Source: Pecten maximus
Lineage: Eukaryota
Assembly: GCF_902652985.1 (NCBI RefSeq)
Contig: NC_047028.1
Span: 23,870,001 to 23,934,000, forward strand
DNA length: 64,000 nt
Direction: 5' to 3'
A program made the position numbers and the translations under genes. The notes beneath the pieces were generated by a model that was not told where the DNA came from, searched no databases, and saw only the letters and a list, made by a program, of their open reading frames with translations. Below, piece by piece: positions 2,126 to 63,439 of the stretch. The number at the start of each line of letters is the position of its first letter. The first letter of the stretch is position 1.

Positions 2126-2293
2126 GTTTTGCCTTTCTCTAGTGTGTAGCGATATTGTTAGAGTGTTATTTGGCAGAAGATTCAAAACTTGCTGAGATAT
2201 TGATGTAATGCTAGGGATAAAACGTTAGGAATTCAACAGTAACAAAGAGAGACAATGATGTCAAGAAATGATTGGACCTCTGGGGAAATGGTA
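2126..2293 (+). pseudogene. Peptide-precursor family pseudogene remnant D0
   Basis: Reads VLPF-(frameshift)-CVAILLECYLAEDSKLAEILM* and later VTKRD..GPLGK, a decayed match to the family signal peptide and tail. Acceptor and ATG are deleted. Confidence 0.7.
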
Positions 2294-3791
2294 TATACCG
2301 CATTTAATAATGAAAAATGTCTGTGAAAAAGAAAGCATAATGACTTGTTACTGGACAACTGTATCCAAATAACCATTCTGAAGAAATACAAGCGTGCCGC
2401 ACGATTTGTCCTGTTATTATTCATTAAATAAATATTTTGATCATGTAAGATTGATTCTATTACCAAAAAATGCCTGATGTTGTCTCCTGATTCCTACGAA
2501 AATTCGATTGAATTATTTGATATAGCTCCTGAAGAATATGATTGAAGTCAAATGTTATAATTTTGATTTCAAATAATATACATATTTACATGTAATTTTA
2601 CAATGTAGATACTATGAACACATAATGGGTTGTCCTCAGAATCAGAGCTTGGGTAACGACAAACAACTAGAAGGCAACTCAGCCGACATCGACATACCAA
2701 AATAGAATTAGTAATTCCAATTAGAAAGCCATACAACTTTTTTCAATTCGTCGTCATCAACTTGTATCTTTCGAAACCTGGTGTCATTAATTTTGCTTTC
2801 GTAAGCTCCTGACATCTATCTATTGAAAATAGGTAAGGACATATTCAACGACCACGTATTGGGAAAGTAGAGAGTTTGCTTACTTTGAAATTGATAATTC
2901 ATAATAAGAAAGTAGATACCATCGGTTTTAAGCTATTCTTGTTGGCAACACTGTAAAAGTGCGTTCTACGATAACACAGATATGATTGACTTTAAACGGG
3001 AATAATAGCTTAGAAATACTATTCATACATTAAAAAACCGGTTTGGAATCCAGAGGAGTGACGGAATATTGTGTATTAAGTCTCCTTTTTAGACAGCTAA
3101 AGATTATTCATGTTTTAAGTTTTTTAGCTTATTAATCTTTTTAGAGTCCCTCCCGTCGGAACTTGACATCAATTACGGCCAAAATTTGGAACAAGTTTTT
3201 AGATATCAAATCAGCTGTGACATGTTACCGTCATATGCTGGTGAAGCGAGGGCCTTATTTATTTAGAGATCAACAATCAACAATAAGGAAACCGACATCT
3301 TCACGCTACCGTACAGATTTGTTTTAAGTTGTGTATGTCAATGGTTCTTTGTTTACATTATATGGACATTCCTACAAGTGACCAAATGTTATTTATTTAG
3401 CCTTTATTCCATAGAGATGGAGAAACATACAACAAAGACTAATTTTTGACATAGTTGATCCGTTAAAAGCATTGAACACGCCTTTGTTCTGTTAGATATT
3501 TGATTATGAAATGCTTATAGTACAAATCCATTTTTGGAAAACATCACCATATCTGTTTTTTGACATAGATAGGTTATTTGAAACAGCTGCAGACGCAGTA
3601 ACTATTACTTAATTTAAAATTAATAGATCTTCTAAAAGCAGGTAGCATGTCATAATGATTTACTATATATATTATTGTGTAATATCGATAATACGATTCT
3701 ATTTTTGGGAAACATTGACATTTTTGTGTTGTGATCAAAAGCAAATCATCGTATGCTAAAACCGAATTTTAGCAGACATGATCTGTAATTT

Positions 3792-3826
3792 ACTGCTGTA
3801 CCAGATGTGAATGTGAGCTTATATAA
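3792..3826 (+). promoter_or_regulatory. Gene A1 core promoter (E-box + TATA)
   Basis: actgctgtacCAGATGtgaatgtgagctTATATAA. Non-coding exon 1 follows at about 3847-3894, with GTAAGT donor at 3895. Confidence 0.75.
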
Positions 3827-4244
3827 TAGGAGTTATTGGTTCACCACATCTACTACTAATAGACGCCAGTGCAGACATTTACGGAATATACTGGGTAAGT
3901 AGCTTTGGTTCATTATCTTAATGAGTTGACATTTTTGGTAAAACGTTCTTCGTGTATTCAAACGATGTAGAAATTTAATACTTAAGTCTACATTTATGTT
4001 TTAATTACATTCATGAACATGATAATATCTCGAACACTGATTCTCGATGAAGTATACGTTGCTATTTGGCAGTTAGTTCCTTCTATTTGATGTGGCTTTT
4101 ATTCATCCTATTCGCCAATGTTACACAGATTGAAAATAACAGATGCGTTTGTGTAAGAAAATAATAGATACAAAAGTATTTATAGTTGGACAGTATTCGT
4201 GTTCAAAACCCGATACCAGAACATTTTTATATTCTTCCAGGAAA

Positions 4245-4445
4245 ATGACATTAGTTCCTGTGTTTTTTACTTTCCTCCGGTGTGTAGCAATACTGTCTGG
4301 GGGATGTTTGACAGAAGTTTCAGGACTTGCTGATCTAAAAAGAGAGGACGTTAGTCATAGAGGGATAGTGTATCTCAAACTTCCCGATGCTAAAATCCTT
4401 AGGAAGAGGGCTGCTGGAGTATTTCCTCAACCACCCGGGAAGTGA
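4245..4445 (+). CDS. Secreted peptide precursor A1 (66 aa)
   Basis: Acceptor ttcttccag (4240) then gaaaATG. MTLVPVFFTFLRCVAILSGG-CLTEVSGLADL-KR-EDVSHRGIVYLKLPDAKIL-RKR-AAGVFPQPP-GK*. The ORF-track start at 4143 lies in the intron. Confidence 0.8.
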   Translation: MTLVPVFFTFLRCVAILSGGCLTEVSGLADLKREDVSHRGIVYLKLPDAKILRKRAAGVFPQPPGK

Positions 4446-5651
4446 AGACTTGTAACAAAAGGAATCAATGATATCATAACTGAAAATGTTTTATTGTATA
4501 TATCGAAACATATCTGATTTGGTTATATGATTGCTGTGTTATTGTTATTGTTTAAACACACCCATTACAAAATGTTCGCATGCATGGGTGTAATATCGCA
4601 TATACTGAAATCATTAAAGGCTAATAAATTGATTCACATACTTCCAGACATTGGCAAAATTGAAAAGAATTTTTCAAGTTAGATAAAGTAGAGCCAAAAT
4701 GAACTAAATCACATAACTCTAGGACTCGTCAGTGATGCTAGTTGTCTCAAATGAACATAGGACGCGACCAAAAGTGACATCAAAATTTTAAAGAGAGGCG
4801 AAGCAAATTTCAATATTTGAATTTTAACGAACCTTAATAAAATGGGTATGGATTAAAACTAGACAAACAACCAGGCTACTATAAAATGTGGATATAAACG
4901 TGTAGACGAAACCTTATATGTATCTCAAAATTAATAAGATATAGGCAAAATATAAAACCTAATGAATATCTGGCAGCCTTAACAATCACCTGACCAGCGC
5001 TATCTAAACAGACCAACAAGCAAACTTCCTGTTTTGATACCACGTTTTATGTTACAATATTAAACCACATTAGTTATTATGACAACGGGAATATCATGTA
5101 GCCCGCATTTGCCCTAGCTTTTTATGGCGGGTGCCGTCCATGAAGTAGTAGGCCCTTACTCTCTCTCTCTACTCCTGATCGTATTACCCTTGCACTTTTG
5201 CTAATCTATATATTTGTTTATATTTTGTCTTTGTTCAATCGATTTTGAATCATGGTTTGGTTTTGATGTCGGTATTCTTTGTTGCTTCTTCTCTGCGTCT
5301 CCTGCAGTAAGAAATTTTGTTTTTTGTTTGTTTTTTAACAGGAAAATTGATTCACGTTAAAAGGCAAACTATTCTATACAAATATAATTGAAAGTCATTT
5401 TTCTAGTCTATACCGTTATGAAGGAAAACTATTTAAATGTATATATAAAAAGAGGTGTTCGCAATTAGTGTAATTGTACAACTAGGAATATAAACAATTA
5501 CAAAAGTTGTGGTCTGACGATCAAAGCATAAGTATAGCAAAATATTGATGGCGTGATATTTTGGAAACAAATTCTATATGTATATGGCGATCAAAGACAA
5601 ATAATTGTATGTTGATCCAAACTGAAAATAAGGCGACAATCATGAACTTTT

Positions 5652-5920
5652 ACGGCCGTACCAGATGTGAATCTGGGATTATATAATAACAGGTGTCACA
5701 AGATTATCACATCTACGACCCTTAGACTGCCGTATGAACGTTTTCCGGAATACACCGAGTAAGTAGTTTTATATATCATACATATACCCTGACGTTAAGG
5801 TAAAATACTGAACTCTTATAACATTTTCAATAATTCTGAAAAAAATAATTGATATGCTTCGCATTTAAATGTTTTCCCGAAATATATGTAATATGTAAGG
5901 TCCGTTATGATAATACAAAT
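5652..5920 (+). pseudogene. Gene B1 remnant: promoter, exon 1 and start of intron; coding exon deleted
   Basis: Nearly identical to the B2/B3 promoter (TATA 5680-5686) and donor (GT 5759). Homology stops at 5920 and no B coding exon occurs in this unit. Confidence 0.8.
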
Positions 5921-7009
5921 GTTAAATGTATACCGGTCAACGCTAGTGTTAAACGTATACCGGTCAACGCTAGTATTAAATGTATACCGGTCAACGATAG
6001 TGTTATATGTATACCGGTCAACGCTAGTGTTTAATGTATACCGGTCAACGGTAGTGTTTAATGTATACCGGTCAACGCTAGTGTTTAATGTATACCGGTC
6101 AACACTAGTATTAAATGTGTACCGGTCAACGCTAGTGTTTAATGTATACCGGTCAACGCTAGTATTAAATGTATACCGGTCAACGGTAGTGTTAAATGTA
6201 TACCGGTCAACGCTAGCGTTAAATGTATACCGGTCAACGCTAGTGTTTAATGTATACCGGTCAACGCTAGTATTAAATGTATACCGGTCAACGGTAGTGT
6301 TAAATGTATACCCGTCAACCCCAGCGTTAAATGTATACCGGTCAACGCTAGTGTTTAATGTATACCGGTCAACGCTAGTATTAAATGTATACAGGTCAAC
6401 GCTAGTGTTTAATGTATACCGGTCAACGCTACTATTAAATGTGTACCGGTCAACGCTAGTGTTTAATGTATACCGGTCAACGCTAGTATTAAATGTGAAC
6501 CGGTCAACGCTAGTGTTTAATGTATACCGGTCAACGCTAGTGTTAAACGTATACCTGTCAACGCTAGTATTAAATGTGTACCGGTCAACGATAGTGTTAT
6601 AGGTATACCGGTCAACGCTAGTGTTTAATGTATACCGGTCAACGCTAGTATTAAATGTGTACCGGTCAACGCTAGTGTTTAATGTATACCGGTCAACGCT
6701 AGTGTTAAACGTATACCTGGCAACGCTAGTATTAAATGTGTACCGGTCAACGCTAGTGTTAAATGTATACTGGTCAACGCTAGTATTAAATGTGTACCGG
6801 TCAACGCTAGTGTTTAATGTATACCGGTCAACGCTAGTGTTAAACGTATACCGGTCAACGCTAGTATTAAATGTATACCGGTCAACGATAGTGTTTTATG
6901 TATACCAGTCAACGCTGGTGTTTAATGTTTACCGGTCAACGCTAGTGTTAAATGTATACCGGTCAACGCCAGTGTAAATTGTTTACCGGTCAACGCCAAT
7001 GTTAAATAC
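5921..7009. repeat. 27-bp minisatellite, about 40 copies (gttaaatgtataccggtcaacgctagt and variants)
   Basis: Directly visible tandem array; it explains the 9-aa LNVYRSTLV periodicity in ORFs 5907..6602 and 6621..6977. Confidence 0.95.
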
Positions 7010-7742
7010 ATATCCCGTTTTTGCCACTCACTGCACTTAAGCTGGTTCCGGAATTTCAATTTCCGGATTTCTTGAAATTTTGATTATCAACTCGTGCAAC
7101 CCGATCGGCCAATTAGCCGGTGTTTCACGTGAACCAAGTCCCTGTGTAGAATGCGTTTCTGTGGTTTGTATCTGTTTTCCCGAGTAAATACATGCAAGAC
7201 ATGAAACGGGTACTTTATATATGATACGAGGACAAAGAGTAGTGTGTTCAGATTTAGAAAATCACAAATACACACTGTAACTGAGAAAATAGAATGACGT
7301 AAGATTCTGGTGTAAAAAGGCGGGAATTCCCCAGGCGCGGGTTCCCAAGTGCAGTGTAAATGTCGGAGTTACTGTCTTTCGATTATCGTACCCGTGTGAC
7401 CTTAGCGGAAACTGTTGCATCCAGGACACGACAGGAAAAAGAACATAATGTACCACATATGTAGAAACATGATTAATTATGTATTTTGGATATAGATGTT
7501 TGTGATAAATATATAAAAAAAAAAAAAAAATTGTAGAGAATTGTGTCTCTTGTTTTTTCTCTGATATTGCAAAATTGTAAGAAATACTGGCAGTGACAGT
7601 AAAATTACAAGCAGCTCACCGAGCGCTACAAGTTCAATCAGACAAACAGAACAGACTTAGTAACGTCACTCCTGACGTACGTCCGTACATGTAATAGACT
7701 CTCCGGAATGTGTGACCTCGCGGTACACAGTACCTATGTTTA

Positions 7743-8154
7743 AAACCCTATTGTGACCGTTCTGTGATAGATATAGAAAAACAAAAGATACGCTTTTCTT
7801 CAGAACTATCTCTTCTTGTTATGTTTGGAGCTTCAGATTTTTGGATTGAAACGCTGACATACATGTAGATCACACCGAGTCTTATAAGTGTGCTTTTCAG
7901 TTAGCTCCAGAAAGTGGTCTGAATTAGCCGCATGTACATTACGTTCCGTCCTTCAATACACTACATTCCACACATTCTTGTGACGTAACACTCGTGACGT
8001 AACATCCGCCACCTCTCGATAAAATACGACCCTTTTTCAAAACCCTATTGTGGCCGTTCTATGAAAGATATAGAAAAACTAAAGATACGCTTTTCTTCAG
8101 AACTATCTCTTCTTGTTATGTTTGGAGCTTCAGATTTTTGGATTGAAACGCTGA
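7743..8154. repeat. ~113-bp direct repeat (7743-7857 and 8039-8154) inside the insertion that replaced B1
   Basis: aaaccctattgtg(a/g)ccgttct...gatttttggattgaaacgctga occurs twice. Confidence 0.85.
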
Positions 8155-8791
8155 TTTTTAAGGACCGGTTAAACAGAAGCTACCGGTCAAAGTGACGATT
8201 TTGGCATGTTTGACCCAAAATATCTCATAAATACGAATTTCCACAGGGATACCAAATACATCCAGACCTAGATCAAGCCAAGTTTTACAATGGTTCAAAA
8301 GACCATCAACATTGTATGTGCCATTTTTTCCGCTCCCAAATCGCTACAATAGCCGGCAAAATAGGCGAATTAGCTCATACTATCATTACGTTCCGTAAGG
8401 AACGATAACGAGTTATCGTCCCTTACTACACTTCATTCTTTACTAGAGGGTGACACCTGAAGGATGTCACAGATGGAATGAAGTGTAGTAAGGGGCGATA
8501 ACTTTGTGTGAGCATGTTTTGTCAAAATCGCTCAATATCTAATTTTCGACCAATACAAAGAATGTGTTGTTCGTAAAGGCAACAAAACTCATGAAATTGA
8601 ATTTGCAGTCCCCTAATACCCTCATATATCAAATCGAATTAAAACTGAACATTATCTACATTTCGACTAATCACAGGCCGGGAATTGGCGGCCATTTTGT
8701 TTAAATGTGAAAGTGAGGCTACGAGAGCGACCGGTGTTCAATGATGTACCTATATATACCAAATTTCATCAAAATCAGACGATATCGGAAT

Positions 8792-9546
8792 CTGCATATT
8801 CTGAAAAATCAAAAACAATTTATTCATATCAAAATATTTCATCAAATTGTACATGAATATTCTTTGATAGCAAATAAATATCAAATCTAATTATTTTCCC
8901 GAGAATGTCATCGCAATTTTCATCACATGGTCTACAGTAATCGCAACATGATTTTCAATGCTACCTATTTTAACTGTGTGCATGTTCTACCGGGCGCCGA
9001 AAAATATGAAATGTCGATTGTTTTGCCTTCGACTGACAAACTGGCAAAAGAAACTGTTGAAGAGATAACCGTTTCTGAATGTCTGATTCAGCTGTAGAAT
9101 GCCCGTGTTCTTTGAAATTTGACAACGGTTCATCATGAACTCGCGCCAGTAATTTTTTTAGATCTGTGTCCGGGGTTTCCGATATTGTTAACGTTGCGTC
9201 ATCACGTGGTACGAGACCACAAAGCACTAGCCATAGTTCATTGATTTTATGTGTGTACACGCGCTCACAGTGTGTAAGCTTATTATCTGTCAGTCGGCAG
9301 TCAGTCACGTAACAATAAACACATGTCCTTCTGGGCTCAATTTGGCGATAATAACGAGGTCACGATGACGTTTTTTTACCATTTGTTCTCGAAATATGAC
9401 GGCTGATGGCGGTATGCAAATTTGGCGGTAAAACGGGTGTATTAGCGTAGGAGGAAATCCGTTCTGAATAGGTACATGGCGTTAAGCGAGTTTGGCGGTA
9501 TAACCGGTGGCGATATAACGGGTCGCGATATAACGGGGTTTAACTG
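8792..9546. mobile_element. Left-truncated copy of pogo/Tigger-like MITE
   Basis: Colinear with 23780-24525; right TIR gcgatataacggggtttaactg followed by TA. Confidence 0.75.
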
Positions 9547-12500
9547 TATATAAAACGGCATTTTACGTACAAAATAGTGAAGAAAACTTTCATATTTGAT
9601 CACTTTTCGATAAATGAATAATTCCATTATATATATGTATATGTTATCTAATTAACTTGTGCATCGCAGAGTAGGCATATTGCCTTGTTTTGTTCAGGGG
9701 CTTGTTTGTAGTGTAGCACCACTTTCGATTTTGTTTTTTCCAGACACACCCCTGGTAAACGTTGGCCTTTCCTCTGTCACCGGCCGCCTATAACTGCTTT
9801 CACTTTCATAAGCTGGGTTCTCTATTAAAGTATCCAATAGGATGAACAACACAAAATATAGAAACAATCAATCGAAATGTAAAGTATTCCAAAAGATAGA
9901 TTCAAAAACGGAGACACCTGAAAATGTTAAAAGGAAAAAGACCATGTGTTCGGAAAGGGTAAACGCCCTTTTCTTCGTTGAACCAGCCGCTATCCGAATC
10001 TAGATCAAATCAGTAAGTGACATGTTTTCATATTCAGAACTTGAGTAACGACAAACAGTAGACAATCCAATCAAAGGCGTCATCGAACATACTGCAAAAG
10101 TAAACATATCCCATTGATAGCGAATTCGATAATACAACCATTTCAATTTGTCATCAACTTGCGTCTTTCGAAACCCTGTGCTTCAATTTTTGTTTTCGTC
10201 AGCTGCCGATATCGTTTAATTGAAACTAAGTTTGGACATATAACGGTTATATGTGGGAAAACCCAGAAGTTTGTTTACTTGGAACTGGAAAATTAATAAA
10301 AATTGATATAATTAGTTGTAAGCTGCTCCCGTCGGTAACAGTAAAAGTCGGCATTGTGATGATATGGATATGATTGATGTGTCTTAAAATGGGTATTAAA
10401 GCTTAAAAATACCCTTTATATATTAAAAACGGGTATCGAATTCAAAGGAACGACAAACTATTATGTATTGTATCCCCATTTAAGACAGCTAAAGAAGAAA
10501 TAAAAATTATATACTAGTTTTTAGTAGTTAATTGGTATCTAAATTCACTTGACATCAATCACGGCAATGGTAATATTCGGAACAAGTCCTCAGATATCAG
10601 CGGGTACTTGTTACCGCCATTTGCTAGGGAACCAGGAACCCTTATTTATAAGAAAGTAAAAATAAACAATAGGGAATTTGACATATTTACGCTACCGTAC
10701 AGCTTTGTTGTCAGCTGTCAATAAAATGAAGTATTGGGTCTGTTGTATATCTATCGTTCTTTGGTTACATTATTGAATATCAATTGAATACATAAGATAC
10801 GTACCTGGACATTACTACGACTGGCCAAATATTCATTTAGCCTTCATTTCAGACAGCTGTTGATACATTGAACAATGAACTATTTTGGACTTAATTGAAC
10901 CGATTAAAGTAGGTAACACATCTCCTGTCCTTTTAGATTTTTGATAATGCTATACTAAAAATACAAACCACATTTAGGAAAATCACCATTGATTCCATAA
11001 AAATGAATCAACACGTAGAGCATATGATAATTTGGACTTATCATAGAATCTCATTAAAACAGATACTGCCCATCAAATATTATTCCAGAAATGTCATTGT
11101 AATATCAATGGTCTACATAATGACATGTTTTCAACTACCAATTCCACTATGTGATGTTTCCAACGGGCGCCGAAAAATATGAAATGTCGATTGCTTTGCC
11201 TTCGACTGACAAACTGGCAAAAGAAACTGTTGAAGAGATAACCATTTCTGAATGTCTGATTCAGCTGTAGAATGCCTGTGTTCTTGAAATTTGACAACGG
11301 TTCATCATGAACTCGCGCCAGTAATGTTTTTAGATCTGTGTCCAGGGTTTCCGATATTGTTAACGTTGCGTCATCACGTGGTACGAGACTACAAAGCACT
11401 AGCCATAGTTCATTGATTTTATGTGTGTACACGCGCTCACGGTGTGTAAGCTTATTATCTGTCAGTCAGCAGTCAGTCACGTAACAATAAACACATGTCC
11501 TTCTGGGCTTAATTTGGCGATAATAACGAGGTCAAGATGACGTTTTTTTACCATTTGTTCTCGAAATATGACGGCGGGTGGTGGTATGCAAATTTGGCGG
11601 TAAAACGGGTGTATTAGCGTGGGAGGAAATCCGTTCTGAATAGGTGCATGGCGTTAAGCGAGGTTGGCGGTAAAACCGGTGGCGATATAACGGGTCGCGA
11701 TATAACGGGGTTTTACTGTATATAAAACGGCGTTTTACGTACAAAATAGTGAAGAAAACTTTCATATTCGATGACTTTTCGATAAATGTTAACAATTCCA
11801 TTTATTCAAGTATATGTTATCTAATTAACTTGTGCATCGCAGAGTAGGCATATTGCCTTGTTTTGTTCAGGGGCTTGTTTGAAGTGCAGCACCACTTTCG
11901 ATTTTGTTTTTTCCAGACACACCCCTGGTAAACGTTGGCCTTTCCTCTGTCACCGGCCGCCTATAACTGCTTTCACTTTCATAAGCTGGGTTCTCTATTC
12001 AATTATCCAATAGGATAAACAACACAAAATATAGAAACAATCAATCGAAATGTAAAGTATTCCAAAAGATAGATTCAAAAACGGAGACACCTGAAAATGT
12101 TAAAAGGAAAAAGACCATGTGTTCGGAAAGGGTAAACGCCCTTTTCTTCGTTGAACCAACCGCTATCCAAATCTAGATCAAATCAGTAAGTGACATGTTT
12201 TCACAATCAGAACTTAGGTAACGACAAACAGCCAGTAGACAATCCAACCGAAGACGTCATCGAACATACTGCAAAAGTAAACATATCCCATTGATAGCGA
12301 ATTCGATAATACAACTTTTTTCAATTTGTCATCAACTTGCGTCTTTCGAAACCTTGTGCTTCAATTTTTGTTTTCGTCAGCTGCCGATATCGTTTTATTG
12401 AAACCAAGTTTGGACATATAACGGTGATATGTGGGAAAACCCAGAAGTTTGTTTACTTGGAACTGGAAAATTAATAAAAATTGATATCATTAGTTGTAAG

Positions 12501-13159
12501 CTGCTCCTGTCGTTAACACAGTAAAAGTGGCAACGTGATGATATGGATATAATTGATGTGTCTTAAAATGGGTATTAAAGCTTAAAAATACCCTTTATAT
12601 ATTAAAAACGGGTATCGAATTCAAAGGAACGACAAACTATTATGTATTGTATCCCCATTTAAGACAGCTAAAGAAGAAATAAAAATTATATACTAGTTTT
12701 TAGTAGTTAATTGGTATCTAAATTCACTTGACATCAATCACGGCAATGGTAATATTCGGAACAAGTCCTCAGATATCAGCGGGTACTTGTTACCGCCATT
12801 TGCTAGGGAACCAGGAACCCTTATTTATAAGAAAGTAAAAATAAACAATAGGGAATTTGACATATTTACGCTACCGTACAGCTTTGTTGTCAGCTGTCAA
12901 TAAAATGAAGTATTGGGTCTGTTGTATATCTATCGTTCTTTGGTTACATTATTGAATATCAATTGAATACATAAGATACGTACCTGGACATTACTACGAC
13001 TGGCCAAATATTCATTTAGCCTTCATTTCAGACAGCTGTTGATACATTGAACAATGAACTATTTTGGACTTAATTGAACCGATTAAAGTAGGTAACACAT
13101 CTCCTGTCCTTTTAGATTTTTGATAATGCTATACTAAAAATACAAACCACATTTAGGAA
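8990..13159 (+). repeat. ~2.17-kb local tandem duplication (about 8990-10980 and 11165-13159)
   Basis: Same MITE end plus upstream region of gene C repeated at an offset of 2172-2179 bp; 10400-10980 appears identical to 12580-13159. Confidence 0.85.
11165..11718. mobile_element. Second truncated copy of pogo/Tigger-like MITE
   Basis: Right TIR gcgatataacggggttttactg then TA; part of the local duplication. Confidence 0.7.
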
Positions 13160-13419
13160 AACATCACCATATTTCTGACATGACCATATATAAATGATTT
13201 CAAACAGCTGTAGAAGCAGTAACGATGACTAAATTTGGACTTAATCATAGATCTCATTAAAACAGGTAGCATGCCATCATATTGTTTTAGATGTACGAGG
13301 TGTAATATCAATAACACTAATCCATTTTTGGAAAGCATCACAATATTTATGTTGTGATCAAAGGCAAATTAGCGGTTGTTAAATAAAGTTAGATTTTATC
13401 AGACATGATTTATAGTTTA

Positions 13420-13454
13420 ACTGCCGTACCAGATGTGGATCGGAGCTCATATAA
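13420..13454 (+). promoter_or_regulatory. Gene C1 core promoter (E-box + CATATAA TATA variant)
   Basis: actgccgtacCAGATGtggatcggagctCATATAA; exon 1 ends 13526, GTAAGT donor at 13527. Confidence 0.7.
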
Positions 13455-13807
13455 TGACAGTTGTCAGAAGCTCACCACATCCACCACGTTTAGACCCCTG
13501 AGCGAACGTTTTCCGGAATACATTGGGTAAGTAGATATTTTCCAATGCATGTATGACTTATCTATTATTTCTTCACGTTTCCAAACAATGCAGGTATAAG
13601 GTTTACATTTCTTTCAACTTGTTTCACTTATTGTTTCTTTTATTTAAAACGTTGGATTATTCTCCAAGATAAAACGGATAAGAGTTCATATTTGTGTTTA
13701 TATCAGAAGTAAATAAATACCAAAAAAAAGGAAAGTTATAGCGGGGCAGTTTTAATGTTCAAAAATGTATACCAGACCAATGTTTTGTGTTGTATTCTTT
13801 CAGGAAA

Positions 13808-14699: not shown

Positions 14700-14741
<42 letters not shown>

Positions 14742-48448: not shown

Positions 48449-48553
48449 GACGGGACTTTAGGGTATAATTGACGGGACTAAAGAAGATAATTGACGGGAC
48501 TAAGGGGGATAATTGACGGGACTAGATGGGATAATTGACGGGACTAAGGGGGG
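48449..48553. repeat. 22-bp intronic minisatellite (~5 copies, gacgggactaagggggataatt)
   Basis: Directly visible. Confidence 0.85.
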
Positions 48554-50272: not shown

Positions 50273-51762
50273 TTTTCTGAAAGAATACAACACAAAACAT
50301 TGGTCTGGTATACATTTTTGAACATTAAAACTGGCCCGCTATAACTTTCCTTTTTTTGTATTCATTTACTTCTGACATAAACACAACTGTGAACTCTTAT
50401 CCGTTTTATCTTGGAGAATAACACAACGTTTTAAATAAAAAAAATAAGCGAAACAAGTTGAAAGAAATATAAACCTTATATCTGCATTGTTTGGAAACGT
50501 GAAGAAATAATAAATAAGTCATACATGCATTGGAAAATATCTACTTACCCAATGTATTCCGGAAAACGTTCGCTCAGGGGTCTAAACGTGGTGGATGTGG
50601 TGAGCTTCTGACAACTGTCACTATATGAGCTCCGATCTACATCTGGTACGGCAGTTAAACTATAAATCATGACTGATAAAATCTAGCTTTATTTAATAAC
50701 CGCTAATTTGCCTTTGATCACAAAATAAATATTGTGGTGCTTTCCAAAAATGGATTAGTGTTATTGATATTACACCTCGTACATCTAAAACAATATGATA
50801 GCATGCTACCTGTTTTAATGAGATATATTATTAAGTCCAAATTTAGTCATCGTTACTGCTTCTACAGCTGTTTTGAATCATTTATCTATGTTCACGTCAC
50901 AAATTTGGTGATGTTTTCCTAAATGTGGTTTGTATTTTTAGTATAACATTATCAAAAATCTAAAAGGACAGGAGATGTGTTACCTACTTTTATCGGTTCA
51001 ATCAAGTCCAAAATAGTTCATTGTTAATGTATCAACAGCTGTCTGAAATGAAGGCTAAATGGATAATATTTGGCCACTCGTAGTAATGTCCAGGTACGTA
51101 TCTTATGTATTCAATACATATTCAATAATGTTATTAAAGACTGATTGAAATACAACAGGCACAATTACTACATGTCATTGACAGCTGACAACAAAGCTGT
51201 ACGGTAGCGCGAATATGTCAATTTCCCTATTGTTTATTTTTACTTTCTTATTACAAATTAAGGTTCTGGTTCCCTTGTCAATGGCGGTTACAAGTACCAG
51301 GTGATTTGATATCCAAGGACTTGTTCCTTTTATTACCGTTGCCTTGATTCATGATCAATTAACAACAAAAAACTAGTATATAATTCTTATTGTTTCTTTA
51401 GCTGTCTAAAATGGGGATAAAATACATAATAGTTCGTCGTTCCTTGGAATTCGATACCAGTTTTTTTATATATGAAGTGTATTTTTAAGCTTTAATACCC
51501 ATTTTAAGACACATCAATCATATCCATATTATCATGATGCCCATTTTTACTGTATTATCGACAGGGACAGCTTACAACTATATCAATTTTCTTATTATTA
51601 ATTTTGGAGTTCCAAGTATTCAAATTTCCGGGTTTTCCCACATATGACCGTTACATGTCCTAACATGGTTTCAATAAAACGACAATCTTTACAAATGTCG
51701 GTAGCTGAGGAAAACAAAATTTGAAGCACTAGGTTTCGGAAGACGCAAGTTGATGACAAATT

Positions 51763-51893: not shown

Positions 51894-52789
51894 AGATTGG
51901 TTGCTTCATAAAGGTTTGAAGAATTGAGGGTCACATGGTCGCCTCAAGAAAATTGTAATATAGGGAAATGACACTGCGGAGTTTATCTTCAATACAATTA
52001 CGTCGAAACTTATACGGTATAAATGACTAATGATGTGTATATTGCTGGAGCGAAAACAAGTTGAAACAAAGGTTTCATGTTAAGTCTCGGGATCAAACAT
52101 TGACCCTACCGTTAAAAAAACACGTTACAACAATGTATGGATAACAATCGCCACCAAAACAGGCTTTATTCGATTATATCAAATAGCCATCATCGACAAT
52201 TCAGCAGAAGATGCTTACACACCTGGAACATTATTTCTTATGCTTCCTGAATTTTCCTTCGTTTCGAAATTTTTGAATATAAATATACATTACCAAATTG
52301 TTAGGCCGTCCATTTCCTTTTGATTTTAATATTGTTTATTGAAGATTCCGTCATTATTTATATATTTTCCAATGATTTTTATTTTCCCATGATATCGTTA
52401 AATTTCATAGAGTCTGTTACATCAAATAAAAATATACAGTTTGTATATCGTCGTGGCAGTACATCAATGACATTTCAGTTTACATCAAATAATAAGTTAT
52501 GACAAGTTGCAAAAATTCTATATCAAATGATCGCGAATTACGATTCTTTAACCAGTGTCTAATATTTCTGTGTCTATGTCTAGTGTCTTTAAAGGATTAT
52601 CTGCGTGTATATGAAAGTAGGTTTTTTAGCCTTTTATGACGTCATTCAGCCATATTACATGCATTCATACGCGGACATGTAATTGGTGTGGTTGATTTAA
52701 TAAAACAGCAATACTGTCATGAAATTCTATGGCTTTAGACATATCAAACATAAATACACTTTAAGCTATGAAATCATTTATTCCTTTTT

Positions 52790-53025
52790 TATGTTTACAC
52801 GTGATGTTACAATTCTTCCATTTCCAAAAAGATTCTGGATTATTTCTTCAGCAATCTTGCTCCTCTTAGGCATTTTGTCAATGATATGTACGGTTTGTAC
52901 TCCCCCTGTATATCCACACCCATTTTGCAGTTGACCATTAAGTCCTTAAGGGTCTGCCAAATATATATATCTGGTAATATCGCTACACACAAGAGTACAG
53001 GCAAAACTACAGCAGCCAACACCAT
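52790..53025 (-). pseudogene. Peptide-precursor pseudogene E
   Basis: MVLAAVVLPVLLCVAILP, then a frameshift in an (AT)n run and a TAA. The restored frame gives ..GGVQTVHIIDKMPKRSKIAEEIIQ. Promoter 53406-53440 and donor 53334 are retained. Confidence 0.8.
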
Positions 53026-54401
53026 TATCCTGAAAGAAATACGCTTTTTAAATATGTATACTGCCCATTATTTACACTTTGCTATTTCTTAATTTCTTAA
53101 TTTCTTACATAGATATGACTGTTAATTCTTATTTTTGTTACCTTGGCGAATAAGAGTAATAAAACGTATTGAATAGAAGGAACTAACTGACACATATCAA
53201 CTTATACCAGATCCCGAGAATTAGCGCTTGAATATTTTCTTGTTGGAATCTGATCAATGCCTACATTGTTTTGAAGCATGAAGAAAGAAAACTTTACCAA
53301 ATATCGGTTATGGAAATGTTTCAAAACCACTAACCCAATGTACTCCGGAAAAGTCCGCACAGGAGTCTATAAGTTGTAGATGTGATTAACTTGTGAGACC
53401 CTCTATTATATAAGCCCTGATTCACATCTGGTACGGCAGTAAATCTAAAGACAATGTCTGATAAAATTCAGTTTGAATTAACATACGTTGATTTGTCTTT
53501 GATCACAACACAAATATGGCGATGATTTCCAGAAATAGATTCGTATTATCAGTATTACATAAACATATAACAGAACAAAGGCGTGTTTCTCTGCTTTTAA
53601 CAAATCAACTATGTCAACAAATGTTCTGTGTTATTGTTTCACCAGATGTCTGGAATGAGGGCTAAATACATAATATTTGGTCACTCATAGGTATGTTCAT
53701 ATACGTATTACATGTAAACAAAGATACATTGAAATACACGAGTCTTCGTTAAGTGTTCTAACTTATTTTCAATAGCATAATTTTCTTGATAGCTGTCAAG
53801 AGCTGAGGAAAACAAAACTTGTAACACAAGATTTCGATAGACGCCAGGTGATAACAACAAATGGAAAAAGTTGTATGATCGACATCGTTATCCATAGGGA
53901 ATCTTCTATTTCCTTTTGTCGGTTTGATTGTCTACTGGTTATTTGTTGTTACCCCAGTTCTGATTGCGAGAACATGCCATTTCCCAAAATAACCTAGAAT
54001 GTGGAAATACAATGGTTTTTTTCATTTTCCGTTTGAAAGTTATCTATCAAAATAAGAATGTTTGACTTCAATCACTTTCTACAAAGGCTATCTCTAAAAC
54101 AAAAGTGACTTGTTAATTGAATTTATAAACCAGGAAACAATTTAAGGCATTTTTTGTAAAAGAATCATTCTTTCACAATGAAAATGGTTAATAAATCATA
54201 ACAGGAGTTCCTGGGGATAGGTTTTAGATGGGGTTTGGTTTGGGGTAATTGTTGAACAGAAATCATGCGGGAGATTTTGCATTTCTTCAGATTGTTGACG
54301 CCCGATTTCGTGTTATTCGCTATGATTGAAATATTAAACAAATTATTAACACATACCATTTTGGTTATTTTGATCATTGTATTTGAATATTTTTCATAGA
54401 T

Positions 54402-54452
54402 AGGAGGAGCAGGGCTGCTGAAGAATTGCCTTCACATCAAATAGGGAACTAA
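54402..54452 (+). pseudogene. 3' fragment F of peptide-precursor family
   Basis: RRSRAAEELPSHQIGN* followed by family-type 3' UTR; 5' part absent. Confidence 0.7.
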
Positions 54453-54713
54453 TGATTTGTGACAAAAAAAGAATAACTTATTTCAAACCTGAAAATGATG
54501 TGTTGTTTGATATACCTAAACCTATATAATTTCATAAAATGATTGCTGAGTTATTGAATGAACACAGCTATAGCGAAAGTGTTCTTATGAATGCTTGTGT
54601 TATGACATGTAATGACGTCGTTTACCTTCATGTATACAAAATTACGACATCAAAACAAAACCGCAATTCTAAGTAAAGCTCAATACATTAAGGGCATTAA
54701 CTATATACATGAA

Positions 54714-54863
54714 GTTTTGCCTTTCCTTTTGTGTTTAGCGATATTATCAGTGGGACGTTTGCATCAAGACTGGCTGATCAAGCACGGGATGTTGGTGATG
54801 TTGGCATTCAGCAGTAATAAAGTCATTTTGAGAGACAGGGCTGCCGACGAAATACATAGACCT
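54714..54863 (+). pseudogene. D-like pseudogene remnant G
   Basis: VLPFLLCLAILSVG...VILRDRAADEIHRP, preceded by the same aactatatacatgaag deletion junction as the D copies. Confidence 0.7.
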
Positions 54864-55309
54864 TATAATCAGAGCTGGGGTAACGACAAACAACCAGTAG
54901 ACGACCCAACCGACATCGACATACCGAAATGGAATATTTCCCATACAGCTTTTTTCAATTCGTGTCATCAACTTGCATCTTTCCAAACCTTGTGTTAGAA
55001 ATTTTGCCCTCGTCAGGTTTTGACACCTATAAAAATGTGCTATTGAAAACAATTAGAGAGTTTACCTACTTAGAAAACGAAAATTAACAATAGGCGAGAA
55101 ATTGATATCATTGGTTGTAAGCTACACCTCTTGAAAAAAAGTTAGGGCATAGAGAGTTTAATTATTTATTGAAAATCAACAGTAGGCGAGAAATATATAT
55201 CATTGGTTATAATTAAGCGACTCCTGTTGGCAACCCTTTGAAAGTTGGTTTCATGATAAAATAGATATGATTGACTTGTCTTTAAACGGGATTAAATATT
55301 AAAATATAC

Positions 55310-57260: not shown

Positions 57261-58162
57261 ATAAACAATAGGAAAATATTAACGCTACCGTACAGCTATA
57301 TTGTAAGCTATCAATTATATGAGGTAATGAAGTCTCTTGTATTTAAATATCTCTATGTATACATAAGATACGTACCTGGTCATTCCTATGAGTGGCCAAA
57401 TATTATTTATTTAACCTTTAATTCAGACATATATAGATACAATAACAATTAACAATTTTATAACTTGATTGATCTGATAAAAGCAGGTAACATGCCTCAT
57501 GTTCTGTAAGGTATTCGATTATGTAATAATGATAATAGTGTGAATCCATTTTTAGAAAACATCACTATATTTGTGTTGTGACCATAAACAAATAATTTTA
57601 AACAGCTATATACGCAGTAACAATTTCTAAATGTTGATTAAAAAATATCGAATCAAAGTAGGTAACATGCCATAATGTTGTTTTAGGTGTACGATATGTA
57701 ATATTAATAATACTAATCCATTTTTGGAAAGCGGTTGTTAAATATAGGTGAATTTTATCAGACATGAATTATAATTTAACTGCCCTACCATATGTAAATC
57801 GGAGCTTATATAATAGTAAGTGTCACAAACTAACAACATCTACGACTGATAGACTCCTGTGCAAACATATCGGTAATACACTTGCTAGATATATTATTCT
57901 TTTGCCTGTATGACCTGACAACCTATTTTTTTTTTTTTTTTTTTTATAAAGCTTTCTTCATGTAGGTATTCATAAAGTTTACATTTATTTCTACTTGCAT
58001 ACTTTAATAACTTTAAAATAACCGAACGCTGATTATCGATCATGTATCCGTTGTTATGTGCCTGCTATTTTTTATTCATTTTTTTCTATTTAATACATGA
58101 GCCAACAAAGATTTCAAAAACGTACAGCTGCACAATTTGTTTTGTTATATTCCTTCAGAAAA

Positions 58163-58360
58163 ATGACTTTGATAGCTGTAGGTTGGCCCTTCCTCTTGTG
58201 TGTAGCGATATTGTCAGAGGGATATTTGACAGAGGCGTCGCGACTACAGCGTGGGAAAGGAAAACTTAAAGGAATAGTACTTACCAAGCCTCTCACTGAC
58301 AAAATCATCAGGATGAGCAGGGCTGCTGAAGAATTGGTTTTACCCCCACACGGAAGATGA
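58163..58360 (+). CDS. Secreted peptide precursor H (65 aa)
   Basis: MTLIAVGWPFLLCVAILSEG-YLTEASRLQRGKGKLKGIVLTKPLTDKII-RMSR-AAEELVLPPH-GR*. Promoter 57779-57813 (CATATG + TATATAA); acceptor AG at 58157-58158. Confidence 0.8.
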   Translation: MTLIAVGWPFLLCVAILSEGYLTEASRLQRGKGKLKGIVLTKPLTDKIIRMSRAAEELVLPPHGR

Positions 58361-59747
58361 TGAATTGTAGTATGAGGTGTAAAATATCAAAAAAATCAAA
58401 AGGAATAAATGACTTCATAGCTGAAAGTTTTTTTATGTATTTCAACACATGGTCACGCACGGTCTTATTGAAATAACCACACCAATTACAAAAGTTTGCG
58501 TTTGAATAAGTGTAATATGGCATAATAGCGTAAAAGGAAACTAATGAATTGTCATCATATACTCGTAGATAATCAAATGAAAAAAGTATTAGACAGTGAC
58601 TAAAGAATGGTAATTCTGGTTCCTTTTATATGGATATCTGCAATTTGTCATGAATTATTAATTGATGTGAATTGGAATGTCATTTGATGATTAATAGCGT
58701 ACCTCTGATTTATTCACTGCCGAGATTAGAAATGAATTAAGCCAAACAACTCCTTTACCAACTGCTGTATATTTCTGTTTGATGTAGCGGGATGATTTAT
58801 GTAATCTAACGATATTATAGGGAGAATAAAATCATTGAAATAAAGATAACTTATTACGAAATCGTCATTAAACAATATCAAACTCATGAGAAAATTGATG
58901 TCTAAATAGTTTTGTAGTGTGTATTAAAGAATGTCAAAACGAGGAAAAAATAACAATGAAGTTCAAGAAGAAAAGTCATGTTCCATGTGTGCAAGTATCC
59001 TTTGCTGCATTTCCGATACCGGCTATATGATATAATTATTCATACATTATTCTAGCGTGTTTCTACAGTAGAAACAAACTATGACCTCAAGACTCAACTT
59101 AAAACCTTTTTTCCAACTTCTAGTTTGGATTCCATGGTGGATACAGGTATTCACATTAAAGAAAATAAATCGCCGAAGATACGGATACTTGTCCGATTTC
59201 AAGTATGTCAACGGAAACTTAATATCACAATGTTTTTGGAATGTCATGAAATAAATACATTTCATGTATTTTTTCAAATATTAACTTAAAAAGTTATTTT
59301 CTGATGCGAGCATTGACAACATTAATTTTGTCAACTTTATTTGACTTATTTTGCTTGGCTATTTTGAAAAATGGAAAAATGTTAATAGCTATATGGTAAC
59401 TTTACTCTAAGTTTAGCACGATTTTGTATTTTTAAAAGACGAAATCTTGTGATGTGTAAAGAAGGCCATGCAGATATTATCAAAATTATCAAGTTCACTT
59501 CAAGCATTTTATCAAGTATAGTTTAACCTGTTTTATTCATATACATCAAACTGCATTTTTCACCATTGATAATGATATAATCATATTAAGTGACTGTGGT
59601 ATATCAGGTGTGATATCAGGTTTTACATAAAAATAAAAATACAACAGGGTGTATAAAATACAATTGTAAATATGTGTTTATGCATTGTGAAGAACCACGG
59701 GGACCCAACCCACAGGGTCATTTTGTTATTTTTTGTTACACATGTTG

Positions 59748-59963
59748 CTACACTTTATCTTTTTTCGAAGGTACAACCTATTCTCCACCAGCCCAGCTCC
59801 TCCTAGTGCTTTTGTCATTGAAGGGTTTGATATGTTCAGCCATTGCACGTCCTCCTCTACCCTGCTTGAGTTCATCACAAAATTGTGATCATTTTACTTT
59901 ATATCCCTCTGACAATATCGCTACATACAAAAGGAGAGGCAAAACTACAGTAGCCAATGTCAT
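59748..59963 (-). pseudogene. Peptide-precursor pseudogene I
   Basis: MTLATVVLPLLLYVAILSEGYKVK*SQFCDELKQGRGGRAMAEHIKPFNDKSTRRSWAGGE*VVP. Two in-frame stops; exon 1 (about 60290-60339) is kept but the promoter is replaced. Confidence 0.8.
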
Positions 59964-61213
59964 TTTTCTGAAGAGAAAGGACATAATACATAAAAGGAAA
60001 TGTTGCAATTCGTTTTGTGAACATGTATGCAGCACCACTATCAATTCTTTGCTTTTTATTGCATATTAAAGCAAACGACTGTTAATACAAATCAGTGATT
60101 TTTGTTTGATAAATGAGAGAAATAGAACTCTCCAGTAATAACTTACTGGCACATACCAACGTTTGAGAATAAGAGTTCGATTATTATGGTGTAAAATATG
60201 CAATAATTTATAGTGATGGTACATGAAGAAAGCTTTACAAACAAATTGGTTATGTCAAGTCATATAGACAATGGATAAACACTTCTTACCAAGTATATTC
60301 TGAAAATGTTCACACAGGCGTCTATCAGTAGTAGATGTGATGAATATCTACTACTGATATTCTAACTAGTATATTATTTTGGGCATGTTATACAGATATA
60401 CGACAGTCCATTCATGTTTAAGTCTATCATAACTACCTTTGTCTGAGATGTAGTATCTTTAACGTCAGATTACATATATACTATATGAAATTACTTACTC
60501 AAGTTTCCTACATAAAGGCATGGCTTGTGAAAATGTCTTTCAATCACATTTGTATGGAGCATTTTGTCTTTAAACATACATCTGTTTGGCTGTTTGAATA
60601 AATGTTTCTGTTTTATTTCTGCTTCGCATTTTCATTTCTCCTTGTTTCGAAATGTTTGAATTTATATTACGAAATTGTTTAGATGTCCATTTTCTCCCGA
60701 TTTTAACAGTAATTAATAAAGGGTTCATGATTACCTATTTACATTGCATGGCTTTTAATCTTCATACCATATCGTTAGATTCCCTAAAAGAGCATGTTGC
60801 ATCGGACAGAAAAAGACAGCCGTTGGCAAAGGAGTTGTTTGATATCATATATACACCAGTTACCATCAATACCATTACAGTTTACATCAATAAGTAAGTT
60901 TTGATAATTTGTTTTATACGATATGAAATGAACCACAATTACGATTCATTAACCAGTATCTAATGTTTCTTCATATCATTATCTGCAAGTATTTAAAGTC
61001 GATTCTTCAGCCTTTAATGCCGTCATTATATGCCATATTACAAGCATTCATAGGTACACTTTTGCAATTGGTGTGTTAATTCAATAATGCACCAGGTGAT
61101 GAAATTATAAAGATTTAGATATATCAAACAAAATATGGTATATATCATATATCAGATATGAAATCGTTTTATCTTTTCGCTTCTGCACATGTTACACGTG
61201 ATATTACAAATCA

Positions 61214-62812
61214 TTACTTCCCCATTGGAAATGGAGGCAATTCTTCAGCAGCTCTGTTCCTGCTGGTGATTTTGTCCGTGAGAGGTTTGATGTGTATTAT
61301 TCCATTAACTCCTCCACTCCCAAACTGTTGTCCTGACGCGTCTGTCAAATATCTCTCTGGTACGATGGCCGACAAGAGCCTGGCAAAATGAAATGAAAAA
61401 ACTGTAACACTTTTTTTCATGGTACAGTTTTTTCATATCTTTTTGTACCATGGAAAAGTGTACCATGGTACAAAAAGATGTGAAAATTCAAATCATTTAC
61501 TTAGGAAAAAACACAGCTTACATTCACATGTTTATGTACCAATAGCCGGTATCAGCCGGCAAAATGATGTGAAAGGTTTTGTACCGCGTTACACTTTTTT
61601 CATTTCTTTTTGTACCATTTTTGGTACAAAAAGATATGAAAAAAGTTAACCAAGAAAAAAACGTTACAGTTTTTTCATATCTTTTTGTACCATTCGTGGT
61701 ACAAAAAGATGTGAAAAAACTGTACCATCAGAACATCGGGAATGTCGTCATCCAACACCATGACCAGGGCTGACCCCGAATAGCAAAGGTTTGATAACAC
61801 TGTCACAACAAGCCAAAAAGTGTATAAATCACTTCTGAGGACACAAATCGAGTCGAAACTATAGTGTATTGGGGTGTACCTTGGGGCTAAGAATTATTAA
61901 ATTAAACTTGTATAATGTCATCATTTCCATTTTAGAGATAAACAATTGAACGATTGAAAAAACATTACAGCATTTCTCTAATGGTCTTACAATATATATA
62001 TTCCTCGATGTCTTCAGTAAAACCAACTATATTTTACGAGTGGGGCTAATATTTCGATATTTGTGCATTCGTGAAAAATATTAAAATATTAGTTGCATGA
62101 GTGAAATACATTTGGTATTATTGAAGATGCTGTTAGATATGCTGTTTATTACATTTTCGTAGCAAAATATACCGGATCATCTTTTAACTTTTTCCATTTT
62201 CCACTTTTATAGAATGATTAATTTTCGATATTTCACTGCTAAAAGCGTAATAACGAAACCCATCGGTGTCTATAGTTTCTTTTACTCGAGAAGTTTTTAT
62301 TACGTAATAAAATTGACGGTCCCATTTCCCCAAAACGGACCCCATCGGTGATAATAGTTTCTTGTACTCGAGAAGTTGAGGCAGATTGGATACATTGACA
62401 ATGTAAGTACAGATAATTCCTCACTGGAAAAAAATATTAAACACGTTATTTTTAAAATGAAAAGTCATTTAAAAGTTAAAATAGACAATTGACTATGTGA
62501 TGACAGTTTTATCTGGGAGTCATTTGTCAAACTCAGTCACCCTTATGTCTGGCCGTTTCATATGTTTCTGTACCATGGCTGTTTTCGGCCGCTTTTTGGT
62601 ACAAAAAGATACAAAAGCGACTGACTCATTTCAACTTCGCTTTCACATCTTTCTGTACCATACAATGGTACAAAAAGATGTGAAAAAAATGTACCATGAA
62701 AAAAAGTGTTACAGTTTTTTCATTTCATTTTGCCAGGCTCTTGTCGGCCATCGTACTCTGGCAATATCGCTACACACAAGAGTAAAGGCCAAACTATAGC
62801 AATCAATGCCAT
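61214..62812 (-). pseudogene. Peptide precursor J split by a TIR element
   Basis: Removing 61361-62755 plus one TSD restores MALIAIVWPLLLCVAILPERYLTDASGQQFGSGGVNGIIHIKPLTDKITSRNRAAEELPPFPMGK* (65 aa). Donor at 62975; promoter 63034-63067 with TATA changed to TATGTAA. Confidence 0.8.
61361..62755. mobile_element. Non-autonomous TIR element (1395 bp), superfamily unassigned
   Basis: ~65-bp TIR tacgatggccgacaagagcctggcaaaatgaaatgaaaaaactgtaacac; subterminal tgtacca/tggtacaaaaagat repeats. TSD ctctgg (6 bp), or equivalently tctg (4 bp) with GTAC termini. Confidence 0.88.
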
Positions 62813-63439
62813 TTTTCTGAAAGAATATAAGATAAAAAATTGTGTTGGTATACATTTAACGATTGGTTATTTTCAGGTTAAAGAATGCAAGTAGAAATAC
62901 ATGTAAGCTTTTATTAAGAAATCTTTACCAAAACATGTTGTCAAGTCATAAAGGCATTAAGAAATATCTACTTACCCAGTGTACTCAGGAAAACGTTCGA
63001 AATGGGATATATCAGAGCTGGTGACACCTACTATTACATAAACTCCAATTACATCTGGTACGGCGGTAAAAATATAAATCATGTCTGAAAACATGGTAGC
63101 ATGCCACCTGCTTTGATGAGATCTATTAAGTCTAAATTTAGTAATCGTTACTGCATCCACAGCTGTTTAAATTTATTTTGTCTATGATCATAACACAAAT
63201 GTGATGATGTTTTCCAATGACGGATTCGAATCGTACTATCAGTATTACATTATCGAATATATAACAGAACATGAGGCGTGATGCCTGTTTTTATCAGATC
63301 AATTAAGTCCCAAATTGTTATTGTATTTACAGCTGTCTGAAATGAAGGACCAATGAATAATATTTGGTCACTCGTAGTAATGTCCAGGTACGTATCTTAT
63401 GTATACGAAAAGAGATTGAAATACAAGAGACTGACAAGA

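Follow-up and report, generated by a model that had tools for sequence, protein, structure and literature searches.

The 64,000 nucleotides of the Pecten maximus genome analysed here (C14:23,870,001-23,934,000, in an assembly of 918 Mb and 3,983 contigs), to which we refer as the window, harbour a cluster of small genes and gene remnants predicted to encode precursors of secreted peptides. Open reading frame (ORF) listing, tblastn and a family hidden Markov model (HMM) recovered eight intact ORFs (65-71 amino acids, aa), one copy with a frameshift and no fewer than nine decayed ones, in agreement with a preliminary description of this DNA, which had listed eight intact frames, the frameshifted copy A2 and about nine dead or partial ones. 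The intact copies match the family HMM with E-values of 1e-27 to 1e-34, which places the family beyond chance. The number of about 18 copies given in that description holds for the window, but not as a total: after addition of 200 kb of flanking DNA, the six-frame ORFs of which were scanned with the family HMM, the locus turned out to span 253 kb, four times the size of the window, and to contain 29 uninterrupted Met-to-stop ORFs of 65-107 aa (E-values 1e-22 to 1e-34) and about 57 HMM-matching pieces if decayed copies are included. Subfamilies designated K, L, M, N and P sit up- and downstream of the window. In a whole-genome profile search all significant matches fell inside C14:23,694,435-23,947,236, and outside this cluster no significant family match was found in the 918-Mb genome (best E 0.19). 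This is a real, essentially undescribed and lineage-restricted family of putatively processed secreted peptides, and we consider it likely that its members form a taxon-restricted tandem family of prepropeptides that would be secreted, cleaved by convertases and amidated. The members within the window are given below by position, position 1 being the first letter of the window, with the genes first and the remnants after them.

3799-4445, plus strand: A1; upstream module 3799-3827, exon 1 ending at 3894, exon 2 starting at 4241, coding sequence (CDS) 4245-4445 (66 aa)
13427-14100, plus strand: C1; promoter module from 13427, exon 1 ending at 13526, exon 2 starting at 13804, CDS 13808-14017 (69 aa), AATAAA 43 nt past the stop
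19300-19962, plus strand: A2; promoter and exon 1 intact, exon 1 ending at 19395, CDS from 19753 broken
21104-22053, plus strand: B2; module 21104-21143, exon 1 ending at 21203, intron of 632 nt, exon 2 starting at 21836, CDS 21841-22053 (70 aa)
26225-26940, plus strand: C2; TATAA 26248-26252, exon 1 ending at 26324, intron 26325-26655 (GT..AG), exon 2 from 26656, CDS 26660-26875 (71 aa) with a hypervariable core at roughly 26720-26785, AATAAA 26919-26924
44770-45423, plus strand: A3; module 44770-44798, exon 1 ending at about 44865, CDS 45223-45423 (66 aa)
46648-47606, plus strand: B3; module 46648-46687, exon 1 ending at about 46747, CDS 47394-47606 (70 aa)
50060-50648, minus strand: C3, in the opposite orientation to C1 and C2; module 50648-50538 with a variant TATA box, exon 1 ending at about 50549, CDS 50272-50060 (70 aa)
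57798-58409, plus strand: H; TATA module 57798-57814, CDS 58163-58360 (65 aa), AATAAA 58404-58409
2143-2205, plus strand: D0, short pseudogene with the end of the signal peptide, the mature N-terminus and an in-frame stop
5635-5919, plus strand: B1, B-type copy of which only the promoter, exon 1 and the intron start are left, 96% identical to B2 and cut off by a 27-bp minisatellite (5920-7007)
17540-17608: D1, fragment paralogous to D0
43116-43178: D2, fragment paralogous to D0
52781-53443, minus strand: E, decayed copy (52781-53067) with a recognisable signal and a frameshifted remainder; promoter remnant 53323-53443
54387-54995, plus strand: F, decayed copy or copies; tail fragment 54387-54449, signal-to-tail remnant 54606-54995
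59781-60341, minus strand: G, pseudogene (59781-60065) with in-frame stops; exon-1-like remnant 60275-60341
61217-61432, minus strand: I, damaged at the 5' side; core, R-N-R site and AAEEL...Gly-Lys tail kept
62723-63071, minus strand: J, remnant of the signal-peptide exon (62723-62866) with promoter and exon-1 remnants (62968-63071)

The minisatellite next to B1 comprises 40.3 copies of its 27-bp unit (88% matches) and gives rise to spurious ORFs of 118-231 aa. Orphan pieces of promoter and intron of the B type, sharing 71-81% identity with B2 and devoid of the coding exon, lie at 16509-16950 and 36684-37081.

Gene structure and transcription

All subfamilies have an upstream module in common, in which a CAGATG E-box stands about 15 nt before a TATAA box. 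Exon 1 is non-coding, measures about 40 nt and ends in ...GGAATA(C/T)A-TGG, directly followed by the donor GTAAGT; the intron, 280-640 nt long across the family, lies in the 5' untranslated region (UTR), its acceptor is pyrimidine-rich with the AG 4-5 nt before the ATG, and exon 2 holds the whole CDS (about 200 nt) together with a short 3' UTR. The signal, tail, promoter and two-exon layout that had been described as shared are indeed present across the window copies, and promoter module, GTAAGT donor and pyrimidine-AG acceptor were found at the three junctions proposed earlier (3894/4241, 13526/13804 and 21203/21836). The residues conserved in frame upstream of each Met are accounted for by the 3' splice site, which lies there. 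A polyadenylation hexamer is kept 17-43 nt past the stop in the C, H, K, L and M types, and the B genes show a degenerate hexamer, AATATA, at the position of the AATAAA of the C genes. A transposable element or satellite was rejected as an explanation of the repeats, because a TATA promoter, an intron and a poly(A) signal accompany each copy individually, and the true transposons of the window are insertions separate from these copies.

The gene C2 is transcribed and spliced as predicted. Its exon 2 is present in 16 of the 24 P. maximus runs listed, from five studies, with contig sets of transcriptome size (23-177 million letters). When the contigs of four runs (four studies) were mapped onto 21001-27000, two runs from two studies, X1 and X12, contained the joint from 26324 to 26656, skipping 331 nt with GT..AG borders, so that the spliced transcript with the anticipated exon 1/exon 2 joint was found for C2. 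A complementary DNA fragment from X12, flanked by Illumina adapters, extends from 26286, 34 nt downstream of the TATAA box, to 26918, where it abuts the AATAAA. A retrocopy as source of this joint was rejected: all genomic copies of the CDS are located in the cluster and each is preceded by intron sequence, and the joined form must therefore be RNA. The same exon 1/exon 2 junction is spanned by the RefSeq protein XP_033761233.1, which belongs to the paralogue Cu1 (C14:23772575-23772781, minus strand). Its annotated ATG lies upstream of the TATA box and the frame reads through exon 1, so that the signal peptide is preceded by 42 additional residues and would lie buried 43 residues deep in the protein; the start codon has for this reason probably been mis-assigned.

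Predicted products and their processing

Products were predicted by cutting off the signal after residue 20 and then cutting at R-x-x-R, KR or RR sites. The predicted signal is hydrophobic from residue 2 to 17 and continues with Ser-Glu-Gly, placing Ser at -3 and Gly at -1. AlphaFold models a helix over residues 3-29 only and low-confidence coil beyond, as expected for the precursor of a processed linear peptide. By motif, a basic site (R-x-x-R, RKR or RRR) directly precedes an AAEEL-type or variant peptide in 21 of the 29 precursors, and in 19 of those 21 this tail peptide carries an amidation signal at its end, a Gly with Lys, Arg, Gly or the stop after it. The tail peptide is acidic and proline-rich, comprises 9-12 residues and is of the AAEEL-x-x-PP-x type. 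Members of the C subfamily depart from this scheme, as Ser-Met-Ser-Gly replaces the basic site, the C-terminus reads ...PKES, and G-K-R or G-R-K-R stands after the variable core in C1, C2 and C3. Cysteines vary as well: the C cores contain one to four, in varying number and spacing, A and B one, H, K, L and N none or one, and the M- and P-type members show a C-x9-C loop. With a furin-type site before it and Gly-Lys/Arg after it, the tail looks like the ancestral payload, and the C subfamily seems to have moved the payload to the core. The preliminary description was right in calling the tail conserved, but its designation as a pro-region seems not to suit most subfamilies.

The explanation that we favour is a taxon-restricted set of tandemly amplified two-exon genes for small secreted prepropeptides, assembled in one 253-kb locus on the chromosome-scale contig C14. 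The E-box/TATA promoter would drive the non-coding exon 1, the 20-residue signal peptide would be removed first, proprotein convertases would cut at the R-x-x-R, RKR or RRR sites, and a carboxypeptidase together with the amidating enzyme would act on the terminal Gly-Lys/Arg. In the A, B, H, K, L and N subfamilies the result would be the release of a C-terminal amide, AAEEL-x-x-PP-x-NH2, along with variable N-terminal peptides; in the C subfamily, which has lost the basic site and gained Gly-Lys-Arg after the core, the product would be the amidated hypervariable core itself. Evolution of the family proceeds through segmental duplication, inversion and decay, with the C core diversifying rapidly.

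A hormone-like reading stays viable on account of the conserved, putatively amidated C-terminal peptide and of a multi-repeat member. The latter, XP_033761154.1, is a 107-aa member at the far end of the cluster (C14:23946892-23947236, minus strand), a multi-copy precursor variant in which a unit of about 31 residues, closed by RSRR each time, occurs 2.5 times in tandem. Were the family neuro- or endocrine, AAEEL-x-x-PP-amide would be a hormone acting on a receptor, the rest of the precursor a spacer, and the copies a means of dosage or cell-type diversity. The resemblance of XP_033761154.1 to a multi-copy neuropeptide precursor, the furin or dibasic site before and Gly-Lys/Arg after the conserved peptide in 19 of 29 precursors, the C-x9-C loop and, weakly, the conserved CAGATG E-box beside the TATA box, a type of element that neuroendocrine bHLH factors use, all point in this direction. 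Known molluscan neuropeptide genes, however, are usually single-copy and conserved across classes, and the approximately 30 copies, the many pseudogenes and the lack of a detectable relative outside P. maximus speak against such a role, as does, by a weak inference, the presence of exon-2 words in so many runs, a pattern more suggestive of a commonly sampled tissue than of ganglia. In addition, the family motifs are absent from those parts of the supplements to the 63-gene Yesso scallop neuropeptide survey that were accessible (PMC5996578). We regard a hormone family as unlikely.

Sequence evolution, turnover and the inserted elements

Between subfamilies, nucleotide identity amounts to 77% in the acceptor and signal, 55% in the tail, 45% in the middle and 47% in the intron (shuffled control 40%). 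Conservation of signal and tail exceeds the neutral level and the core is hypervariable, as the earlier interpretation would predict. For the signal of subfamilies C, L, M and B, the ratio of non-synonymous to synonymous differences (pN/pS) ranges from 0.12 to 0.35. The C core (about 63 nt from the signal to Gly-Lys-Arg) has diverged by 14-29% between paralogues, in contrast to 1.6-5.5% in the flanks of the same genes, which comprise promoter, exon 1, intron, signal, tail and UTR and add up to about 600-670 nt (p 3e-4 to 1e-9 by Fisher's test), and the core has a pN/pS of 1.54; the pair of C1 and Cu2, a paralogue in which promoter and intron are missing, was left out of this comparison. All eight letters that vary between the four runs in the C2 exon are confined to 26747-26783 and all are amino-acid-changing (codons read by eye), which could reflect allelic diversity or unassembled paralogues. 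The frameshift of A2 stems from the loss of 1 nt in a run of A near 19900, and the distinctive signal peptide of this copy recurs in an intact 66-aa Logan protein with an A-type tail, suggesting that the assembled copy is a null allele, that a related copy is missing from the assembly, or that the homopolymer was misassembled.

The array as a whole was built by direct and inverted segmental duplications that are 91-99% identical. Within the window, one segmentally duplicated unit occupies 2024-16900, 16904-28965 and 42480-47680 (89-97% identity), and C3 belongs to an inverted segment. Large inverted duplications of 94-96% identity also connect C14:23765893-23774792 with 23872374-23916296, pairing the minus strand of the left arm with the plus strand of the right arm.

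Several observations weigh against the reading that we prefer. Within young subfamilies, pN/pS of middle and tail is 0.45-1.7 and in most cases 0.6-0.9, i.e. near neutral. Synonymous divergence is likewise raised in the C core (0.18 versus 0.07-0.10), and the contrast between core and flanks may therefore in part be due to gene conversion of the flanks or local hypermutation; selection, homogenisation of the flanks by gene conversion and local hypermutation may each contribute to the pattern. Neither AATAAA nor ATTAAA occurs within 160 nt of the stop in A1, A3, B2 and B3, three of the 'intact' ORFs outside the window have no acceptor or promoter, and exon 1 of H is devoid of the canonical GTAAGT donor, which makes the splicing of H uncertain. 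As acceptor, promoter or donor has been lost in some copies, an open ORF is not always a working gene. Direct RNA evidence is limited to C2, and none of the contigs of the four mapped runs covered B2, which should not be taken as evidence of silence. The signal-peptide and cleavage calls are rules applied by eye, the predicted products mostly carry a net charge of -3 to +2 and are for the most part anionic or neutral (clearly cationic are only one L-type middle, +4, and a fragment of H, +5), and what we infer about production, secretion, cleavage, amidation and role of the peptides comes from genes and transcripts.

Part of these observations would suit young orphan genes that have no peptide function, the ORFs persisting by virtue of recent duplication and the transcripts being by-products of a duplicated promoter. 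The high identity of the duplicated units (89-98%), the pN/pS near 1 of middle and tail, the fact that about half of all family copies in the cluster are already dead, and the several 'intact' ORFs without promoter, donor, acceptor or poly(A) signal would all be explained in this way. Such an origin nevertheless appears improbable to us: introns have become near-random, yet the signal and the RxxR-AAEEL-PP-Gly-basic motif are kept; 29 ORFs of 65-107 aa have stayed open in AT-rich DNA (33% GC), where stops arise easily; and the rate of divergence of the core is 4-9 times that of the non-coding DNA around it, unlike in neutral decay.

A strict host-defence family in the manner of antimicrobial peptides (AMP) such as the mussel myticalins, with the middle as effector and the acidic tail as neutralising pro-piece, would be in line with a lineage-restricted tandem cluster under birth-and-death evolution and its many pseudogenes, with a broken A2 that has a close and intact relative in a different data set, and with a hypervariable core whose pN/pS is above 1 and which also varies between individuals. 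The order of signal peptide, peptide, basic site and acidic C-terminus parallels mussel AMP precursors, too (PMC12294457). It is difficult to reconcile with middle peptides whose net charge is -3 to +2 in nearly all members, with AlphaFold models predicting neither an amphipathic helix nor a stable fold, and with one to four cysteines per C core, a range that yields no disulfide framework; moreover, the conserved terminal Gly-Lys/Arg would have no role if the tail were a pro-piece. We consider this strict version doubtful, and the anionic products disfavour a classical cationic antimicrobial mechanism in particular.

Returning to the favoured explanation of processed and amidated prepropeptides, our best guess regarding their role is that of extracellular interaction peptides, serving mucosal or haemolymph defence or chemical communication, rather than that of conserved neuropeptides; rapid turnover, pseudogenes, a core varying between individuals and the presence in many runs argue for it. 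The earlier proposal of a lineage-specific secreted peptide system is supported to this extent, secretion, processing and function being predicted features of it. More tentatively, the family may represent one scaffold on which subfamilies switched the amidated segment, the C core varying between individuals as a conotoxin-style arsenal, possibly of a new anionic, amidated class of defence or recognition peptides.

The remaining features of the window are an assembly gap, a group of exons of a different kind and a retrotransposon.

47688-48187: assembly gap of 500 N, starting 81 nt past the stop of B3
48188-49466, minus strand: three calcium-binding EGF exons (EGF_CA, E 1e-17 to 1e-6) inside the peptide cluster
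29270-30130: ORF1-like frame of the retrotransposon, coiled-coil
32374-33399: endonuclease ORF of the retrotransposon (Exo_endo_phos)
33339-35018: reverse-transcriptase ORF of the retrotransposon (RVT_1, E 2e-35)

No family CDS reaches the gap at 47688-48187. The alignment of B3 with B2 extends through the 3' flank of B3 to 47680, 8 nt before the gap, and the first EGF exon continues into the right edge of it. As the homology of duplication unit 2 stops at the left edge and the next member, C3, is inverted beyond, the gap may hide a rearrangement breakpoint; it may also reflect scaffolding uncertainty. A further assembly gap is located at C14:23842237-23842336. The retrotransposon, a non-LTR (lacking long terminal repeats) element or LINE (long interspersed nuclear element), spans 29270-35837, where it was inserted between duplication units 2 and 3, and contains one additional ORF of 240 aa. 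Also between these units, 38360-42086 (minus strand) contains broken ORFs, a match to DUF7869 (E 2.6e-8) and an acidic 207-aa ORF, and is probably a decayed DNA transposon or transposase-derived element.

Relatives and comparison with known systems

When 1.84 billion representative proteins were searched with a profile built from 27 members, four true matches emerged, three of them from P. maximus or near-identical to its assembly and one, the 66-aa A-type protein, from Logan and unlabelled as to species. RefSeq lists two of the three as 'uncharacterized' proteins of P. maximus (LOC117343017 and LOC117342956); the third, deposited as a 'hypothetical protein' of an invertebrate metagenome, is distinguished by a single residue from frameshifted B-like copies of the cluster, from which we infer that it represents scallop host DNA. 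A word search of 5.8 billion proteins revealed nothing outside P. maximus, a word search with H alone gave no candidate, and exact look-up of the eight window proteins in a collection of 15 billion found none of them. Pfam returned nothing above noise for eight members, a profile search of the PDB one chance match only (E 1.2), and the ESM Atlas, queried with H, unnamed clusters only (0.92, below the recognition threshold). Among 8.4 million papers, searches for the literal motifs yielded unrelated text strings only; a search of the literature for a hypervariable peptide family in pectinids yielded none, and the LOC and XP identifiers turned up neither in the texts of papers nor in the supplements of domoic-acid RNA-seq studies. 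The sequences had been described as not recognisable as any named molluscan neuropeptide or antimicrobial peptide and as liable to be overlooked by annotation pipelines, and both statements hold: outside P. maximus these searches, like the accessible Yesso scallop supplements, came back empty, and standard annotation mostly misses the genes, with only two cluster members in RefSeq. Restriction of the family to Pecten is the best current reading, not a proven one, of searches at the protein level, where small ORFs often are uncalled.

Bivalves rely on fast-evolving, lineage-specific secreted effectors, and to our knowledge very few of them have been described for scallops. The approximately 30 genes would supply about 20 distinct predicted amidated peptides, which are cheap to synthesise and test. 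The family would further offer a natural example of a processing-site shift within one scaffold, a 'payload switch', and it is a concrete case of small genes with a single coding exon being missed or mis-started by standard annotation. The hypervariable C core and the difference between broken and intact A2-type sequences suggest a diversity between individuals like that of mussel immune genes, which bears on the resistance to disease of a species that is fished commercially.

The likeness to toxin, antimicrobial-peptide and pheromone families that had been drawn for this cluster stands as far as the birth-and-death architecture is concerned; the antimicrobial side of it is weak, given the mostly anionic products. 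Myticalins are antimicrobial peptides of the gills of Mytilus spp. (PMC5577615, PMC12294457). Their genes consist of three exons, of which exon 1 is purely 5' UTR, the CDS being split by a phase-1 intron, and their mature peptides are strongly cationic, with an anionic C-terminal extension of 39-54 aa (PMC12294457). Both families form lineage-specific tandem clusters in bivalves with many pseudogenes and a first exon that is purely 5' UTR, and both have a tripartite precursor of conserved signal, variable peptide and basic site (often with Gly before it), and acidic C-terminus. The scallop genes differ in having two exons with the whole CDS in exon 2, mostly anionic predicted products, and a conserved tail of only 9-13 aa that itself ends in an amidation signal. 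No mussel protein was matched in the profile search of 1.84 billion proteins.

Conopeptide superfamilies, as generally known, and the mussel CRP-I resemble the scallop family in several ways: near-invariant signal and flanks stand against a hypervariable core in which non-synonymous and synonymous rates are both raised, the variable part contains cysteines, there are amidation signals, and the genes have expanded by tandem duplication. Unlike conopeptides, the scallop family has no conserved cysteine framework, its variable core directly follows the signal instead of lying C-terminally behind a pro-region, and its bearer is a filter feeder without a venom apparatus. Pfam, PDB and the 1.84-billion-protein profile search disclosed no sequence match to conopeptides or CRP-I.

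With classical molluscan neuropeptide precursors, such as those encoded by the 63 genes of the Patinopecten yessoensis survey (PMC5996578), the family has in common the signal, the mono-, di- and tribasic sites, the C-terminal Gly and, in one member, internally repeated peptide units. It differs from them in its approximately 30 paralogues in a single, rapidly turned-over array, and the protein-level searches, in which small ORFs are under-annotated, found no bivalve or other molluscan orthologue outside P. maximus. By these comparisons, the scallop family stands apart from myticalins, conopeptides and the known neuropeptides alike, though it would work like them in several respects.

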